From contig NIVC01002124.1 in assembly GCA_002269645.1 (NCBI GenBank), positions 1-64,000 on the forward strand: DNA of 64,000 nt, written 5' to 3'. The stretch comes from Macrostomum lignano (Eukaryota). Position 1 is the stretch's first letter. Each line of letters opens with the position of its first letter. The notes beneath the pieces were generated by a model. The model had not been told where the DNA came from, ran no database searches, and saw nothing but the letters and a program-made list of their open reading frames with translations. The position numbers were made by a program, and so were the translations under genes. This document shows positions 22,116-45,106 of the stretch, piece after piece.

Positions 22116-23175
22116 ACTTTTTACTACCCTAATACTATCACACGTATTTACGTAAATTCAATCAACAAGCCTAAATAAGACTAAAAAATTCAGGTATTGT
22201 ATGCGTATGCAGCTATATTTGCTATTGTTTCCGCAGTGCCAAAACTGAACCTAAAAAAAGTTTTAAAAAGAGAATATATATATATGATAAATTATCAAAT
22301 AGAGGCGTAACGAACTCAATACATGCAATAATCGATTAGTATCAATAGAAACAATAATTGGCAGTGCGAGCCTAGAGGCTGGTGTTAGACTTGGTAGCAA
22401 TACCTAATAAACCAATTGACACTGCCCAGCAGACAATGATTAAATAGTCAGGCGGATTACATAAAAAGTGCATCGAATTCAATCTAAGTCTTATCTCATA
22501 AACTGTTGATTTACGATGCGATCCAGTTTAAACTTGAGGTGCAAATTTCTAAATTTGAGGTGTTAAAAAATTCCGAGTAAAGTACATTACATACTACTGT
22601 TTACCAACCTTGACTGTGCTACATAGTAGTACTCAGAAAGAATCGCTACAAAAATGGACCGGAAGCGTGAATATTTTAATTACTAAGCATATAGTGGATT
22701 AGTAAAGCAACAAGACAGTCCACTAGATAACAGAAATAAACACAAAAACATTGATTTGAAAGTTTGAAACCAAACGCATGCAGAATACGGAAACGGGGGT
22801 GATCAAATCGGCTGAGAGGTGAGTACAGATCGATTTATATATATAATATATTGGTTTAAGGCTTGGATATGCGATTCCTTTCAGTTACTAGTAGGCGCAG
22901 GTAGCAACCATTCAACCAAGTTTTGCCAAAGACTCCCCCGTCCAGTTTGTTGAAAACTGAAAACCGTATCCATAGCGGAATCCTTCCCGTTGCTATGCAG
23001 CTAGATATAAAAGAATTACTTCGACTCGCAAACTGTAGTCGGTGTGGCAAAAAGGCTAAGGGGTAAGAAAAAAGGCAGAATATTGGGATTTAGCAAGTAA
23101 TTAAAAAAGCACAGACACGCCCAGTCTAGTTGTGCATCCAGATTCCAAATACTGTTCATTCTCTTCTTGTGAGAA

Positions 23176-27570: not shown

Positions 27571-30500
27571 TTTCCTCTTGCCTACCTTGCAAACAACATT
27601 TTTCTCAATAAACCTAATAATATTAAATAAATATTACTAAGAATGACTATATATACCTTACTTATTCAACATTAATTATCAACCAATATAATACTTGAAC
27701 TAGACTAAAAAAGAGAAAGTAGGTCTAGCCTTAGCTACATAAAAATGTTTGCCAATATTGATGGCATTGGCATATAGCAAATAGTAATAGGACTAAGCTA
27801 TAAAAAAACTATACTTGATTAAATTTTGGCTAGGCCTATCTACCTATTCCCTTTTTATGTGACTTATCAATAACTAAGATTTAAATAAGTGAACATTTGA
27901 ATTATAACTAGACTAGAATATAATTTAAAATGCAAAAAATTAAAATAAATTTGAGACATGCTAGCAGGTTTTTTTTAATGCAAAGTGTATATACACCTTA
28001 AACTTTGAAATTGCTTTCTCAAATTAGATATAGGCACAAGATGCAACTTTGCATTTGTATATTGTCTTTTGCCAAAAAACCTTGCATGTTAGGCATAAGC
28101 TTTAAAGTCTAAACCTAATAGTTGGAAAATGGTCCATTTTGGTGATAAACCATTCTAGCATCTAACAATAGCCATTTCAATAACAACTCATTATAGCAAC
28201 AACCTATTTGGCAACATTTTTGATATATTCCATCAAATACCATCTAAATGAAGTGACAAACTTGCTATGCAAATACTATGATAGTTGAATTTAAAAAAGA
28301 AACATTTTATTAATATTATAGGGGCCTATGATAGTAACTTCTAGTGGTTCTTATCATGGTAGTTTACTTTAGGTAATCGTTAACTATTATCTTGTAATTT
28401 AACAGAAATGTCTTCTACATGACCATAAAAATAGCCATTTTGCTTCCTACCTACGATGATTGTAAAAATAACAGTTTTGCTATTTATATGATTACATTAA
28501 GTAAAGACCATAAGCCCGCATGATGTTTTATGCATTAACTATAAAAATAACCGTTTTATTATTTATATGGTCACTGCAACAATAACAACAATTAATTAGG
28601 CCCCTAATGATTATTAAGAATTACTGATAATAAAGAATTTATTGAAGATTTTTTACATAATTACACTTTGATTTGCTGCACTTTTTGTATACTGTGCCCA
28701 TGATTTGTCAACACCTAATTCGTCAATAGACCTAAAATGTGAGAAATTGGAAGAAGTCAAATTTGTCAATAGTTAAAACAAGCTGAGAGAATTTGCCAAC
28801 AAAATGAGGCAGAATTACTAAAAGTTGTTTTGTATCTCAATAATGTAAATTTCTTTTAAATTTAAAGATTTAGGCCTAGTATATAGAAAGATAGTATATT
28901 TGGAAGATTGAAGAGCCTTTGTACATCAGAATACACAAACCCAACTTGAATGTGCAACTAGCTGGCAATGGGGTGGAGCGTGAGCTAATTGAGTTCTGTG
29001 AGCAATGCCGTACCTATTTTTTCTCTCTCTCCCTTTGTTTTGTACTTAGGCTCTTTTGAAATTCTACTGGACTGCCTTTGACCCACCTAAGGATTGTACA
29101 ATTTGTTGTTCTTAAATATATTGGCGTATTGAATTAAGGTGAAGTGAATTAGCTCTGACTCTGTTAAGACGAGCACTGCACTTCTACAGTTCTTTGGACC
29201 AAACAAAACAAAGGTATTGTTTAGACTTCATATAGGCCTATCACTTCGTGAATGTTATGCATGCAATAAAAAAATTTACATAGTTGAGTATACAGATACA
29301 TAATTGTATATTGTACAACGCACATGTACATGTATATCCAGAGTGGCAGATCGCCAACTTAAGGCCTGCCTAGTAAGGCTGTCTACAATACAAGCTATGC
29401 AACAAAAATTTTACATGGGTCATGACTGTGAAAAAATGAAGCAAAGGAACCTAGCACGAAAAACTATTGTAAAAATACGCCACGTGAGTTGCGACAACAT
29501 ATTACCAATTATAAGAGTATAATTTACTCAACATGCTCATTTGAGTCATCTGCATTCAGCCGTCCTAAAATTAGATCGCGGCTAGAGGAAGAATCTTTCT
29601 AAGAAAGGAAATATAATTTTATTACGAAATTCAAACTAAATTTGATTTAGAAACAAAACTATATACTAGCAGTTAATCTAAATATTAATGCTAAATCTGA
29701 AAGTTTTTAAATTTTTCGACTTTCAAGACAACAATTTTGACGAAATATTATGCTACTACTTTGATTATGGCATCGTATTAAGATAAAGCCAAGATCTTGC
29801 TAGGATTTTTTTACTGTTCCTTTGACGGGTTTAGTGAAGTCTATGGGGTTAGGGTGTAGACCAGTTTAGCCAAACGGCCGTTCACTACTAGCCAAATCCT
29901 CATCACCAATAATGCTAACAATGCGTCAGAGGCCTATACTTGTACGTACTTGTACACGTAGCCATACTAATGCTTGATTTAATTTTTCCACTAGAAGTAC
30001 ATGGCAGGTTCTAAAAATGTGTCAATGAGCTGAGTTGAAAGCAAATTGTTGTGCCAGGGGTGTGGGGTCTGGTGACATACCCTCCCTATCCAATGACCAC
30101 TGTAAAAAATCCAAGCATCAATGTGCATTCTCGTACGTCTTTAGCGCACATGCCTTTCTCTCCTAATTCTAAAAATTCGCTGATGGAGGGGCAACCTCAC
30201 CGCTGGAGCTGCGCGCCGCCACTGGTTGAAGCTAGGTTGAAAGCCACTACATACAGAGCTGCAATGACTATATCCAAGGCCTACTAACAGATTTGCTAGT
30301 GGTACTAGTGAACGCCATTATAACAATTTAGCTATATAGCTACTTAAAAATACAGAGGCCAGGCGGCCCATGCCAGGGCTGCCATGTTTGTTATGTTTTT
30401 CGTTTGCATTCTGCGAAATATGCGTTTATCTATTTTCCGTGCTTAAAATGGTTTGACCAACTTGAGAGTCCTTTTTTGGTGTTCTTCAGTCAGTCAGTAT

Positions 30501-34802: not shown

Positions 34803-36121
34803 CAGGGTGCGGACGATAAATTAGGAGTAACATTTATCTGTTACAGAAAACGCCATAACTCCTCCAAAAATGCTTGTATTGACCTGAAAATTGGTACACG
34901 GGTTCTTTGGGATGTCCTCTATCACCTTCACTCGATGAAGCCGCCATCGGCATCCACGACGCGCTCGATGCGGCTGCGGAACCGTCGGCATGCGTTGGCC
35001 ACCATGTCCTTGTCCAAGCCAGCCATTACCTGGGTGATCTTGGTCTTCAGAGATGCCTTGGTGTTGTGGGGGCACTTGTTGACTTCCCTTTCACAAACGC
35101 CCCACAGGAAGAAGTCGCAGGGATTGCAGTCTGGTGAGCTGGGGGGCCAGATGTTCTTCGGCCAGAATTCCTTCAGGTTGTTTGCCAGCCATGCCTGTGT
35201 CTTGTTGGCGGTGTGTGCAGGGGCACCGTCCTGCTGGAACACGTAGTGGCGGTCTCCAGCAATGCCCTCCATCCACGGCTTCACCACGGTGTCCATCACG
35301 TGGATGTAGGCATCTGCGTTCACCCTCAGACCCTCTTCGAAGAAGAATGGCGGCATGACATCGCCCTCACTTGAGATCACACCGAGGACCATCACAGTGG
35401 CTGGGAACTTCGTTGACATGACAACTGGTACCTCTTCGACATCAGCGCATAGCCAACGATCATTTCTCTTGTTCACCTTCTGATCTTGATAGAAGTTCTT
35501 TTCATCAGAGAAAAAAATCAGCTGGTTCTGGGCCTGAGGGTGCTTGAGCTTGACCAGGAGCTTGGCTGCCTTATCCGCCCTCCTCTCCATGGTAGCCTCA
35601 TTCATGAACTGATGCTTCTTGAGTGCATAGGACTTGTACCTGATGTCTTCATGGACACAGTTCCGGACAGTCTTCTCATCAACATTCAGCTCCCGCGCAA
35701 GGGCTCGGATTGACTTGCTTGGGTCCTCATCGATCATGTTTTGAAGCTGTTCGATGAACTCCGGTGTCCTGATGGCGTCTCTTCTCCTTTTGTGGGTCTT
35801 CCTGTCTACGGATATGTCGTCTGGGTCCTCCCCAGCAGCCACGCTTTCATCAAGCTTCTTCTTGACCCGATAACAGAGACTCTCGGGTAACTTGTTGAAC
35901 TCTGCTATCTCCGCGGCGGTCCTCCCGGCGCGGAGTCCAACAACAATGGCGGCTCTTTTCTGCTCTTCCATTGTTAAAAATGCAGAAATAGACTTGAAAT
36001 CAAAGCTGAAAGTCAGAAAAGACCGGTCAATATAGGGTACAATTTGATCTCACCATTTACGCAACGTTATGTCGGTCAAAACGCACTCTGAAATCACTCC
36101 TAATTTATTGTCCGCACCCTG
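34803..36121 (-). mobile_element. Intact Tc1/mariner DD37D (maT) transposon
   Basis: 26-bp TIRs CAGGGTGCGGAC(G/A)ATAAATTAGGAGT with 1 mismatch, TA target duplication at 34801-02 and 36122-23, and an uninterrupted transposase ORF. Confidence 0.96.
34928..35971 (-). CDS. DD37D transposase, 347 aa
   Basis: FSDEK, QQDGAPAH, WPPSSPDCNPCD with 37 residues between D2 and D3. N-terminal HTH region. Confidence 0.95.
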   Translation of the reverse strand: MEEQKRAAIVVGLRAGRTAAEIAEFNKLPESLCYRVKKKLDESVAAGEDPDDISVDRKTHKRRRDAIRTPEFIEQLQNMIDEDPSKSIRALARELNVDEKTVRNCVHEDIRYKSYALKKHQFMNEATMERRADKAAKLLVKLKHPQAQNQLIFFSDEKNFYQDQKVNKRNDRWLCADVEEVPVVMSTKFPATVMVLGVISSEGDVMPPFFFEEGLRVNADAYIHVMDTVVKPWMEGIAGDRHYVFQQDGAPAHTANKTQAWLANNLKEFWPKNIWPPSSPDCNPCDFFLWGVCEREVNKCPHNTKASLKTKITQVMAGLDKDMVANACRRFRSRIERVVDADGGFIE

Positions 36122-39100: not shown

Positions 39101-39925
39101 TTTTATGAATCTATTTTATCATTCTTAGCAGACTTTGTTATATTTATGTGTAACAAAAATGATAAAATAGATTCATAAAACCAATGAGCCAAGCTATGTC
39201 ATGCATTTTTATGATTCTTAGATATAGGGAATGTATATAAAATAAAACATTAGCATGAATCCTATTTCTAAATGAAAAGCTTTATGAATATCAATAAAGC
39301 TATAAAAAGAAAACATATGAAACAATATGTGCTGAAAAACTGAAAAGTTCATGCCATAGTATTTTTTAAGAAATGTAGTTTCTTATCTTTCTACTTAAGT
39401 AGTCCTTGGAGCACATTAGTTGCTTGCTACTAGTCACTTAGTGCCAAGACCATGGCTTGTTGCTGGGATAGATTTGCCTTAATGCTATAAGTATAACCAA
39501 TAGTGTCTTTGGCATCAGTGCTAGAGCCTGCAGCTTGTGGCCAATGGTATGTATAACTTTGATATTAGCAATATTTTGATGCCTCTGAAGTCTGAATGTT
39601 AGGATCCATTTTTAACATTAGCTTACTACTATGGAATCATAAAAACAAAACAATATTTACTAAAGTGTCTTAGGATTTACAATTTTTCTTGTGTATGAAT
39701 AACACAAAACAAAGTTATGGTTTTTGCATTGGTATTGCTTGAACTTTTGTTGAATTTCAAATTCAAATTCAAAAATTCAAATTTTGTTGAATTTCATGCT
39801 CTATTTGAATAGTTCCTAAACAAAACATGTATTCATGCTTCTGCTAATGCTTGTAAAAATATGGTAAATGAGAGGTTTTATTATCAGTATTTTTCTTATT
39901 GCATGCTGTAAAGCATCATAAATGG

Positions 39926-40318
39926 ATGGATTCTGATTCTGATGCTGAGTGTACAGTAGTATCAAAAGATTGCCAAAAACGGTTAGATCAAGTTGGTAAA
40001 CTTGGCTTCAAAGAGGGTGCAGCAAGCAAAAGTGAACTTGATCAGCAAGTTTGCTTTGACGAAGCCTTCAAAGTTTCGGAGCCACGCGCTGAAAGACTCG
40101 GTGCATTGAGGGCGCGCTTGTTGTGCAAACGCCAACTTGTCACTAATACTGTGGCCTTTGATAGTGTCCTGAGTGATATCGAGCAATACTGCTTGCGTGA
40201 ATTACCAACAAAGCTTCTTGTCAACGACACATTAAGTATTGATAACCACATCGATCAGCTAGAAACTCTTGTGGACTTTTTGTTGTTATCCGCTCAGACT
40301 CCAAGCAGCAATGTTTAG
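39926..40318 (+). CDS. YAE1-like protein (Yae1_N motif), 130 aa
   Basis: KRLDQVGKLGFKEGAASKSELDQQVCFDEAF matches the recalled Yae1 pattern (KxGY/FxxG..Q..F.xG/AF/Y), with an acidic N-terminus. Stop TAG at 40316-18 overlaps the TGS1 start. Confidence 0.6.
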   Translation: MDSDSDAECTVVSKDCQKRLDQVGKLGFKEGAASKSELDQQVCFDEAFKVSEPRAERLGALRARLLCKRQLVTNTVAFDSVLSDIEQYCLRELPTKLLVNDTLSIDNHIDQLETLVDFLLLSAQTPSSNV

Positions 40319-42513
40319 TGACAACAAAGCGCAGGAGTTTACAGCTCAACATTGGAAACGGCTGGCGCATCTGGCTGTCACTTATAAACAGTCAGGTGAT
40401 GACAATCCATTGCGCGCTTTTCTTACTAGGGCTTTTATAACAGATGGAAAAATTTACGACGGAAAATTTCATAAAGAAAAGCAGAATGAGGAGTGTCAAG
40501 TGGAGGTTGGCAAAAAGTATGACGATTCGCTGAATCCAGATGAAAGTGATGTCCAGCCTGTTGTAATGGCCGCAGTGCCTGCTGATGCTGTTTCTGACCG
40601 GCTGGCCGAATTGTGCATTTCAGCCGATTCTGGCACTGCCTGCGACGGCGAAGAGGAGACTCGTACTACAGAAAAAGAAATTGGGACGTCTACTAACTCG
40701 GAAATGAACAAGGAAGCCTGCGAAGTAATGAGTCCGAAAGATGAGGAGCGAATGATGGCTATGCTGGGTCTGCCAACTAATTTCGCTGTCCGTCAAAGGC
40801 GGCAACGCCGAGATGGCGGTGATTCAAGTCGAAAACCAGGAAAACGTCCAATGCAGCACCAAGATCGAGATGCCCCATTAATGGAACCAGAGAAAAATAT
40901 TTTAGAGGCTGCCGACGAGTCGCCAAAGCGACGCAAATCCATTCCCGAAGTTGTTTCTGAAGATTTCAAGGAAGACGCCAATGAGGAACAAGTTTACCAC
41001 GGCCCGCACTGGCCAGACTATGAATGGATTGCTGGCGAGTTCGAACGCTATTGGAACGCTAATCGCGATCGCTGCATCTGGCTAGCTTGGGTCCGCCGTT
41101 TCGGTGCTTACATGACCGAGGAGAGCTGGTCTGGTATGCCAGCTAGCCTGCGCGAAGATAAGGAGTTTCTGCAACTGCTGCGCGAACAACAAGGCTCGAA
41201 TTCGTCATCTGCCGGGTTGCCTGTTCAAGACTGGGATTTAGAGTGGCAGAGAAACAGTGAAACAGCCTACTGGGCCGAGATTCTCCGGTTTGTCTCCCGC
41301 TACCGACCAGGGTCCGGGGCCAAACAGTCGGCCCTGAGACTGGCTAAGCGGCTTGGATTTGTTTACAAAGCTCATCTTGATCAAGATCACGTGTCGGCTA
41401 GCAACTACCAGCTGCTTCCCGCTGGAGAGACTGCCGCTCATCTATCCTACAAAGACTATAAGGCGATTGAACGAGATGCCGAAACAGAGGTATTTTGATC
41501 TTGCTTATTTCCCTGCATATTAAAATTATTAAAAATCATGTACTATTTCTTGCTGCAGACTGTACAACTTATAATGAGTGAGGTACAGTATTCAACCTTA
41601 GTTTTAATACTTTGTAGGGGTCAGAAGAATCACTATAGACAAATAGGATTAGATTTCTGTTAATCTCTTTTATCACGCTTTGTTCCTGTGCAGTTCCATA
41701 CTGGTCTCTTAAGATCATAACTAAAGCCTTCTTCAACTAAAAGCCACCTTTTTGAGATTAGAGAACGCCGTTCCAGTTTACCTGTTGTCTTGTTAAGTTC
41801 CGCTACCTTCCTTCGTGTGTTTTATTTTATAGGCTGCTGAGGCTAAAACCGCCCTGCAAGATCCAATACTGAACAAGTACTGGAATCAGCGCTACCGGTT
41901 CTTCGACAAATTCGACGATGGCATCCAGCTGGATAGAGAGGCCTGGTTCAGCGTCACGCCGCAGAGAATCGCCCGCCATCAGGCTGAGCGACTAAAATGC
42001 CCTGGCATCCTGATTGATGCATTTTGCGGCGCCGGCGGCAATGTTATTCAATTTGCCCAGCTGAGCGGCCACGTTATCGCCATAGACATCGATCCCAGCC
42101 GCCTGGCCATGGCCGAGCACAATGCCGGCGTCTACGGTGTGCTTAACAATATCAGCTTCCTGTGCGAAGATTTTTTCGACGCTGTGCCCCGTCTCGGCGC
42201 CATTGCCGATGCCATCTTTCTATCGCCACCTTGGGGCGGTCCCAGCTATCTGGACAAGGACGTATTCGATCTGGACGAGCCGGTTCTGTCCGGCGGTCGC
42301 TCCGTTGCCGACTGCGTTCGCTCCGCCCTGGCCCACTGCGCCAGCGTTGCTATCTACCTGCCCCGCAATGTGGACCTGGGCCAGCTGACCCGCCTGCTGG
42401 CCAGCTGTCGGGCTGGTATTGTTGAGGTTGAGCAAAATATGCTCAATGGCCGGCTGAAGGCTATCACAGTCTACACCGGTGGCCTTGTGGACGCAGTGAC
42501 TGCTGACTATTAA
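40311..42513 (+). CDS. TGS1: Trimethylguanosine synthase (2 exons, ~619 aa)
   Basis: Exons 40311-41489 and 41833-42513, phase 0. N-terminus HWKRLAHL..LTRAFITDGKIY. Methyltransferase motifs KYWNQRYRFF, WFSVTP, DAFCGAGGNVIQFA, FLSPPWGGP, EVEQNMLNGRLKAITVY. Confidence 0.95.
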
Positions 42514-44655: not shown

Positions 44656-44707
44656 TATAAGCTGCCTATCCGCCTCCTTCAGCAATAAATCTGTCCCAAT
44701 AGCAACA

Positions 44708-45106
44708 ATGGCCGGTGGCAAAGCGGGCAAAGACAGCGGCAAGGCCAAGCAGAAGGCCATCTCTCGGTCAGCCAGGGCCGGCCTACAATTCCCAGTCGGC
44801 CGTATTCATCGCCATTTGAAGACCCGAACAACCAGCCACGGCCGGGTTGGCGCCACCGCCGCCGTGTACAGCGCCGCCATCTTGGAGTACCTCACCGCCG
44901 AAGTGCTGGAGCTGGCTGGCAACGCTAGCAAAGATCTGCGCGTTAAGCGCATCACGCCGCGCCATCTGCAGCTGGCTATTCGAGGCGACGAAGAGCTGGA
45001 CACGCTAATTAAAGCCACCATCGCTGGTGGCGGCGTGATCCCGCACATTCACAAGAGTCTGGTGAATAAGAAGGGCGCAGCCACTGTGCCGCCAAAGGGC
45101 CATTAA
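44708..45106 (+). CDS. H2A.Z: Histone H2A.Z (H2Av), intronless CDS, 132 aa
   Basis: [84 protein letters not shown]. Confidence 0.98.

Follow-up and report, generated by a model that had tools for sequence, protein, structure and literature searches.

The first 64,000 nucleotides (nt) of contig NIVC01002124.1 in the Mlig_3_7 assembly (GCA_002269645.1) of the flatworm Macrostomum lignano, hereafter the window, carry on the forward strand a 130-codon open reading frame (ORF) whose end overlaps, in another frame, the start of the gene for trimethylguanosine synthase (TGS1). The present analysis concerns this gene pair, the spliced-leader (SL) acceptor that precedes it, and the manner in which TGS1 may be expressed as the second of two cistrons. 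Window coordinates are those of the record, and the features are listed in Table 1.

The locus exists in at least three M. lignano copies, namely, those in the window and on contigs NIVC01000487.1 (L002) and NIVC01001347.1 (L006); for the upstream ORF product, NIVC01002124.1 is the one contig on record. The locus of a related species is represented by the Logan RNA sequencing (RNA-seq) contig SRR30276804_55052 (L003; 2414 nt), which was found with the TGS1 N-terminal region as the query (protein P0003). L003 shows no break where the M. lignano TGS1 intron lies, and it terminates in an Illumina adapter; it is therefore regarded as an RNA-derived contig.

TABLE 1 Features of the upstream ORF-TGS1 locus in the window and its relatives (a slash within a sequence or between coordinates marks a splice junction)
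Feature	Positions	Strand	Remarks
SL trans-splice acceptor, junction 39905/39906	39896-39905	+	Window copy reads TTATTGCATG, the SL 3' end
Sequence 5' of CTGTAAAGCATCATAA-ATG, window			TTAT-TGCATG/CTG; last 6 SL bases at 39900-39905
Sequence 5' of CTGTAAAGCATCATAA-ATG, L006			TTAT-CTCATG/CTG; last 4 SL bases, about 2591-2596
Sequence 5' of CTGTAAAGCATCATAA-ATG, L002			TTAT-CTTCAG/CTG; perfect YTNCAG acceptor
Mini-ORF 1, ATG GAT GGA TTC TGA (4 codons)	39922-39936	+	Runs into the beginning of the 130-codon ORF; T at -3; L003 17-31
Upstream cistron, 130-codon ORF	39926-40318	+	Frame 2; stop 40316-40318
Mini-ORF 3, ATG + 4 codons + TAG (5 codons)	39942-39959	+	Out of frame; C at -3; L003 37-54, with equal length and stop position
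ATG-free stretch, all frames (366 nt)	39945-40310	+	Reaches up to the TGS1 start; also L003 40-405
Helix 5' arm, AAACTCTTG	40263-40271	+	Pairs with 40332-40340; L003 358-366
Candidate internal acceptor, TTTTTGTTGTTATCCGCTCAG/	40277-40297	+	Within codons F-L-L-L-S-A-Q of the upstream ORF
Start/stop overlap, ATGTTTAG (TGS1 ATG, upstream TAG)	40311-40318	+	8 nt; TGS1 ATG at 40311-40313, one frame over
Helix 3' arm, CAGGAGTTT	40332-40340	+	TGS1 codons Q-E-F; L003 427-435
TGS1 coding exon 1	40311-41489	+	393 codons, lineage-specific N-terminal region; donor GAG/GTA at 41489/41490
Sole intron of the TGS1 coding region	41490-41832	+	Aligned with a paralogue and protein P0002; missing from the L003 transcript contig
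TGS1 coding exon 2, cap guanine-N2 methyltransferase domain	41833-42513	+	Stop TAA at 42511-42513

Conservation of the gene pair
TGS1 is intact, with a spliced product of 619 amino acids (aa). The product of exon 2 matches Pfam family PF09445 (Methyltransf_15) with an E value of 1.4e-24 (bit score, 87; cutoff, 22). Identity of the protein to M. lignano proteins named trimethylguanosine synthase in UniRef is 98%, and that to arthropod and vertebrate TGS1 within the domain is 45-55%. The window and L003 proteins share 62% identity overall, and their N termini align from the first Met; 5' of this conserved ATG the TGS1 frame is open for just 16-19 codons, with an in-frame TAG at 40260-62.

At the junction of the two genes the sequence reads as in a preliminary description of this DNA, with the upstream ORF ending AGC AAT GTT TAG, the TGS1 ATG at 40311 in the other frame, and 8 nt in common. 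That description had also stated that no room is left for separate signals between the ORFs, and this holds. Neither of the poly(A) signals AATAAA and ATTAAA occurs between 39926 and the TGS1 intron. L002 and L006 have the overlap base for base as in the window, and in L003 it measures 11 nt (ATGCCAAGTAA) with the same +1 frame relation. Because the overlap is identical in two further M. lignano copies and the same layout is present in a relative whose synonymous sites are saturated, it is, to judge from these alignments, more than chance.

The window and L002 differ by 3.2-3.7%, plus indels, in the TGS1 intron and in the flanking sequence upstream, and by 1.7% in exon 1 of TGS1; within the upstream ORF, L002 differs from the window at 0 of 393 positions and L006 at 1 of 393 (synonymous). 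The corresponding ORF of L003 (positions 21-416) shows 63% identity and 77% similarity with 0 gaps. Nei-Gojobori proportions of nonsynonymous (pN) and synonymous (pS) differences between the window and L003 ORFs are 0.22 and 0.70, respectively (dN/dS, ∼0.13), with synonymous sites near saturation. By these measures the upstream ORF is a genuine gene, conserved and under purifying selection as a protein, and TGS1, with its 62% identity overall, is under purifying selection likewise. Along the ORF, pS is 0.30 to 0.33 in the first 30 codons (39926-40015) and 0.58 to 0.98 in later windows, and the low initial value suggests constraint on the RNA or on initiation near the three AUGs clustered there. 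The GC content at third codon positions is 0.39 for the upstream ORF and 0.54 for TGS1 in the window (39926-40315 versus 40311-42510) and 0.40 and 0.50, respectively, in L003 (21-413 versus 406-2289).

Identity of the upstream product
The upstream ORF had been described as YAE1-like, and this designation was abandoned. Pfam Yae1_N (PF09811) has no match at an E value of ≤10 to the ORF of either species or to the motif region alone. A hand-written Yae1_N-like consensus, used as the positive control, matches PF09811 at 1.4e-16 (60 bits), and the test therefore works; a comparison of the same consensus with the Protein Data Bank (PDB) gave no support for YAE1 identity. When the two-species alignment was compared with the control consensus by hhalign, residues 27-54 (GFKEGAASKSELDQQVCFDEAFKVSEPR) aligned with consensus positions 1-28 (28 columns; 36% identity; probability, 57%; pairwise P, 1e-4). 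Every fourth position from 27 to 63 reads G G K D C A S A G A in M. lignano and G G K D L A S A G A in L003, so that from G27 onward 8 of 10 such residues are small (G/A/S/C) and 3 of 10 are Gly, rather than ten consecutive GX3 repeats. Membership of YAE1/LTO1 was rejected on the two grounds of the hidden Markov model search and the repeat count, and the likeness at residues 27-54 appears weak and degenerate, i.e., a lead and not membership.

The YAE1/LTO1 (ORAOV1) deca-GX3 adaptors, which bind ABCE1/Rli1 and the cytosolic iron-sulfur assembly (CIA) targeting complex, are small helical proteins, and helices are predicted for the upstream product also. LTO1 has an aromatic residue at its C terminus; the C termini of the upstream products, unlike that of LTO1, have no terminal Trp or Phe (...SSNV in M. 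lignano and ...CENAK in L003).

Broader searches with the 130-aa product gave the same picture. A word-indexed search of 5.8 billion proteins matched the product to itself alone, and an exhaustive HMMER search of 1.84 billion representatives matched it to itself and to a spurious repeat protein (P0004). Neither the PDB, by sequence or by profile, nor a scan of metagenome contigs provided a match. AlphaFold2, run on the single sequence, gave an all-helical, low-confidence model of five helices (mean predicted local distance difference test score, 63), for which Foldseek found no match in the PDB below an E value of 2. The upstream product is best called a predicted Macrostomum-lineage 130-aa helical protein of unknown family.

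Spliced-leader site upstream of both ORFs
The M. lignano SL is 35 nt long (CGGTCTCTTACTGCGAAGACTCAATTTATTGCATG, with the 3' end ...AATTTATTGCATG) and is added to ∼30% of genes; ∼15% of genes are in operons, for which repeat-adjusted intergenic distances peak near 100 nt, and the enriched trans-acceptor motif is [T/C]TNCAG, i.e., YTNCAG (PMC8629364). At the position immediately upstream of the 130-codon ORF, L002 carries this motif without a mismatch, and the window and L006 carry terminal bases of the SL itself (Table 1). Mlig_3_7 was polished by Pilon with RNA-seq as well as DNA reads (PMC5730564), and for this reason the graded changes at 39900-39905 are most likely a polishing artifact, in which SL-bearing reads were written into the consensus. 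This trace in the assembly locates a heavily used trans-splice junction at 39905/39906, 20 nt 5' of the upstream ORF. In agreement with it, the 10-mer TTATTGCATG occurs three times in the window, compared to 0.26 expected.

A further acceptor precedes the histone H2A gene, which lies 3' of TGS1. The H2A coding sequence (CDS) is annotated as 5' partial and begins directly after its CCTCCTTCAG acceptor, in which the site is CTTCAG, and H2A is for that reason probably SL trans-spliced.

The other two TTATTGCATG sites are on the reverse strand, at 22322-22331 and 29260-29269, and neither adjoins an obvious ORF. Compared to L002, the window copy has insertions of 28 nt (39747-39774) and 39 nt (39793-39831), which sit in a short AT-rich repeat (TTGAATTTCAAATTCAAA...) ∼100 to 180 nt 5' of the SL acceptor.

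One transcript with two ORFs in a related species
In the related species, both complete ORFs are on one spliced transcript: L003 carries the upstream ORF at 21-416 and the whole of TGS1 at 406-2292, uninterrupted and without the intron. The preliminary description had likened the locus to the bicistronic moi-Tgs1 locus of Drosophila and had pointed to related flatworms as the place to look for the same adjacency. Both ideas are borne out by L003, in which the layout recurs with its 11-nt overlap and the 63%-identical upstream ORF. We infer that the mature mRNA of M. lignano is likewise bicistronic and that both proteins would be translated from it. Translation of TGS1 from a dicistronic mRNA had been put forward in the preliminary description as the alternative to splicing, and it is this alternative that the evidence favors.

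The deposited TGS1 CDSs of L002 and L006 are complete ORFs from the Met and, in comparison with that of H2A, are not 5' partial. On this indirect argument, the annotated transcripts would reach 5' of the in-frame TAG at 40260-62 and would not have been cut at 40297, the position at which an internal acceptor had been proposed.

The first canonical poly(A) signals 3' of the upstream ORF are two ATTAAA hexamers just inside the TGS1 intron, at 41519 and 41528, and intronic polyadenylation leading to a truncated transcript is conceivable. In the deposited annotation of the window copy, the upstream ORF is the sole CDS, given as 5' partial (132 aa, KW-MDSD from 39920), and a TGS1 CDS is absent though the gene is intact.

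Possible routes of ribosomes to TGS1
The reading toward which we lean, by a modest balance of probability, is that of a bicistronic mRNA in which access to TGS1 depends on scanning. One mature mRNA would be formed by the joining of the SL at 39905/39906 and, being SL trans-spliced, would presumably have a trimethylguanosine (TMG) cap. Its first cistron would encode the conserved 130-aa helical protein and its second, overlapping by 8 nt in the other frame, TGS1. We predict that TGS1 is made by 40S subunits that arrive from the 5' end and skip the AUG of the upstream ORF and that scanning may resume after mini-ORFs of 2 to 5 codons, which begin at three of the four early AUGs. With leaky scanning and with reinitiation beyond the mini-ORFs, the ratio of TGS1 to the upstream protein would be fixed and low, and termination-reinitiation at the overlapping stop and start may contribute too.

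Several features of the 5' region are consistent with such a route. First, the SL's own AUG, once attached, opens a 2-codon mini-ORF (AUG-CUG-UAA), which would precede the two listed in Table 1. Second, when start contexts are graded by purine or pyrimidine at -3, and not by an M. lignano-derived consensus, the four early AUGs (the SL AUG and those at 39922, 39926, and 39942) have T, T, T, and C, i.e., all have a pyrimidine, and the TGS1 AUG has a purine, G in M. lignano and A in L003. Third, the layout of AUGs is the same in both species, with 39922, 39926, and 39942 corresponding to L003 positions 17, 21, and 37. Fourth, no ATG occurs in any frame in the 366 nt before the TGS1 start in either species, compared to 5.5 to 6.5 expected from the dinucleotide content (codon shuffle P, 0.013 and 0.022). 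This arrangement is suggestive of the anatomy expected for leaky scanning combined with reinitiation after very short ORFs, with statistics that are modest. Algal bicistrons adjust the proportions of their two products through a weak context at the upstream start (PMC7896298).

A number of observations weigh against scanning-dependent access or against the bicistronic mRNA itself. The AUG at 39926 has a G at +4, which partly offsets its weak -3 position. The depletion of ATG is weak under synonymous permutation with the protein held fixed (P, 0.09 and 0.05), ATG-free gaps of ≥366 nt number 10 on the forward and 12 on the reverse strand of the window, and TGS1 itself holds one of 340 nt. The conserved, close overlap of stop and start is not needed for leaky scanning and suggests termination-reinitiation. 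An internal acceptor, in turn, finds a point in its favor in the T-rich tract and CAG/AC located 13 nt 5' of the TGS1 start codon in M. lignano and, aligned, in L003. No M. lignano RNA contig was returned when either the 130-aa product or the spliced TGS1 protein of the window was looked up as an exact match, and L003 may represent an RNA whose processing was incomplete. The deposited annotation is asymmetric, with the upstream ORF alone as CDS in the window copy and the TGS1 CDS alone in L002 and L006. As general background, the upstream stop lies >1.1 kb before the exon junction, a position that in some animals would invite nonsense-mediated decay.

Termination-reinitiation could be the main route rather than a contributor, with 40S subunits moving back 5 nt after the UAG at 40316-18 to the overlapping AUG; we regard this as unlikely. 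In its favor, the close stop/start overlap has been retained (8 and 11 nt) although synonymous divergence is saturated, and a helix of 9 to 10 bp encloses the overlap, its arms and 60-nt loop being kept in L003, where the 3' arm reads CAAGAGTTT and the single change (U.G to U-A) preserves the pair. The overlapping stop and start codons, together with the candidate internal acceptor, lie in the loop, and the helix is not significant alone. Helices of ≥9 bp are common in these mRNAs (29 and 17 per mRNA), another conserved one lies inside the methyltransferase domain, and local folds are not more stable than those of shuffled sequences (z, -0.8 to +0.5, with fold z-scores of -0.5 to -0.8). The mechanism has been reviewed (PMC10275272, PMC3035654). 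After a long ORF a tethering element is normally needed, and UGGGA, motif 1 of the termination upstream ribosome-binding site (TURBS), is absent from the ∼170 nt upstream in both species. Termination-reinitiation would, furthermore, leave the ATG-free stretch and the weak 5' AUG contexts unexplained.

The mechanism preferred in the preliminary description was splicing within the upstream ORF: the transcript would either be left intact, giving the upstream protein, or be SL trans-spliced or cis-spliced at 40297/40298, giving a monocistronic TGS1 mRNA, with the two outcomes mutually exclusive. Trans-splicing there would yield the SL junction ...TTGCATG/ACTCCAAGC. As the main source of TGS1 this mechanism is decidedly unlikely. 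Of the claimed acceptor, the string is confirmed and the function is unsupported: a pyrimidine-rich TTTTTGTTGTTATCCGCTCAG does lie inside upstream codons and ends at 40297, 13 nt before the ATG. The frequency of SL addition and of operons in M. lignano (∼30% and ∼15% of genes; PMC8629364) is in keeping with internal splicing, and true SL acceptors within coding sequence are on record for parasitic flatworms, where few reads usually support them (PMC12582326). L003, however, is unspliced at the site though its TGS1 intron has been removed. The hexamers GCTCAG (M. lignano) and ACACAG (L003) do not fit YTNCAG, whereas CTTCAG, which L002 has at the upstream site and which is also the H2A site, does. 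The CAG-AC encodes a conserved Gln-Thr, and the T-rich tract consists of Leu and Phe codons; pS in the last 20 codons is 0.78, as high as elsewhere, indicating no synonymous constraint. As sequence evidence, 40297 offers no more than a Gln codon that follows Leu/Phe codons would be expected to show.

Further observations weigh against such splicing. The SL ends in ATG, and its joining to ACTCCAAGCAGCAATGTTTAG at 40298 would create ATG ACT CCA AGC AGC AAT GTT TAG, opening a 7-codon reading frame (M-T-P-S-S-N-V-stop) that overruns the TGS1 AUG in another frame; L003 would behave likewise. None of the three copies has an SL imprint at 40297 (all read CCGCTCAG/ACTCC), compared to two of three at 39905, which is weak evidence because the H2A acceptor is without an imprint too. 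The deposited TGS1 CDSs, as noted, are not 5' partial, and for cis-splicing there is no GTRAG donor within the M. lignano upstream ORF. Minor trans-splicing at 40297 is possible, since internal SL sites occur in flatworms, generally at a low level (PMC12582326). The suggested feedback of TGS1 supply on trans-splicing is pure speculation and is supported by no result of this analysis.

A promoter or transcription start for TGS1 inside the upstream ORF, with separate, overlapping transcripts, is very improbable: nothing direct supports it beyond the general occurrence of starts inside upstream genes and the annotation of the window copy with the upstream ORF CDS alone, the relative's spliced transcript spans both ORFs, an upstream-only mRNA would be without an obvious 3' end because no canonical poly(A) signal precedes the TGS1 intron, and the deposited TGS1 CDSs point to transcripts extending 5' of 40260. 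A fusion of the two frames by +1 frameshifting was rejected, the TGS1 frame being open 5' of its conserved ATG for just those 16-19 codons and a slippery signal not being known.

Comparison with known systems
The nearest parallel to a bicistronic mRNA with TGS1 as its downstream cistron is CG31241 of Drosophila melanogaster, which has one transcript with the ORFs moi and Tgs1 (PMC7289441), whose products (modigliani/DTL and Tgs1) are functionally independent proteins (PMC7289441, PMC4643883). In both cases, a small upstream ORF is followed by TGS1 as the second cistron on one transcript. Drosophila Moi, which caps telomeres, evolves fast and has no known domain; the flatworm ORF is likened to it by gene order, not by sequence. 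Unlike CG31241, the flatworm mRNA would be SL trans-spliced, and its ORFs overlap by 8 to 11 nt. No relative of the upstream ORF was found by tblastn or ORF listing at the TGS1 contigs or loci L004, L005, L007 (Daphnia), and L008 (Tigriopus), and the search for TGS1 relatives yielded none from another flatworm beyond M. lignano and the L003 species. Since Daphnia and Tigriopus are without a comparable ORF, the arrangement is not general in arthropods. That TGS1 is again a second cistron, here on what would be the very mRNA that receives the TMG-capped leader, is a notable coincidence.

SL-resolved operons of flatworms and nematodes offer a second comparison. Those of the SL1 type in Caenorhabditis elegans have no intercistronic spacer. 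With SL-resolved operons the M. lignano locus shares a trans-splicing host that has operons, the control of both genes by one promoter, and an SL acceptor at the locus, but the relative's mature transcript retains both ORFs. Genes of M. lignano operons are typically spaced ∼100 nt from one another, with an SL acceptor for every gene (PMC8629364). In the present pair, in contrast, the spacer is -8 nt, the sole SL site for which there is evidence is 5' of both genes, and the upstream gene has no 3'-end signal. Internal SL acceptors of Schistosoma mansoni and Hymenolepis microstoma were defined by SL-bearing reads (PMC12582326), whereas 40297 is a candidate from the sequence.

Green-algal polycistronic mRNAs resemble the flatworm locus in that a conserved pair is carried by one mature mRNA, and in algae the upstream context sets the product ratio (PMC7896298). 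These organisms belong, however, to another kingdom and have no trans-splicing, their ORFs are usually apart rather than overlapping, and the flatworm mechanism is one proposed from sequence alone. The proximity of the stop of one ORF to the start of the next, within a few nucleotides, also recalls influenza B virus M1/BM2 (UAAUG) and calicivirus VP1/VP2 (TURBS) (PMC3035654, PMC10275272). The present pair differs from these viral cassettes in being cellular, in having no UGGGA, and in the position of its AUG, which is 5 to 8 nt 5' of the stop rather than overlapping it.

Implications
A bicistronic mRNA of this kind would add another animal lineage, independent of flies, with TGS1 as a downstream cistron and would make the moi-Tgs1 arrangement of Drosophila less of a fly peculiarity. 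It is improbable, in our estimation, that the second-cistron place of TGS1 represents a selected circuit (autoregulation), or convergent or very old selection in flies and macrostomids for low, coupled output, and not an accident of compaction. Were autoregulation to apply, translation of TGS1 from this mRNA would depend on the cap and leader supplied by TGS1 activity, with the AUG of the SL adding a 2-codon mini-ORF.

Independently of such a circuit, the locus would offer, in an organism capable of transgenesis, a defined case for the translation of long upstream and downstream ORFs from an SL/TMG-capped mRNA. For a trans-splicing flatworm it would indicate that not every tight gene pair is SL resolved, which matters for the annotation of operons and gene models, and it defines a conserved 130-aa protein without a detectable family. 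The probable presence of SL bases in the Mlig_3_7 reference is a caveat for the reading of acceptors and at the same time flags, at no cost, those SL sites that are in heavy use.

Other features of the window
The histone H2A gene (44684-45106) and a gene for an MCM helicase (from 46712) follow TGS1 on the forward strand. TGS1, H2A, and the MCM helicase gene are thus on one strand, and their order is repeated in paralogous copies; the gap of ∼2.2 kb between TGS1 and H2A makes a shared operon uncertain. A scan of the window against Rfam matched no RNA family. On the reverse strand, ∼4 kb upstream of the gene pair and within AT-rich, repeat-rich sequence, an intact ORF of 347 aa (34928-35971) encodes a transposase of the Tc1/mariner type, with a match to DDE_3 at 3e-08 and a weak match to HTH_Tnp_Tc3_2.

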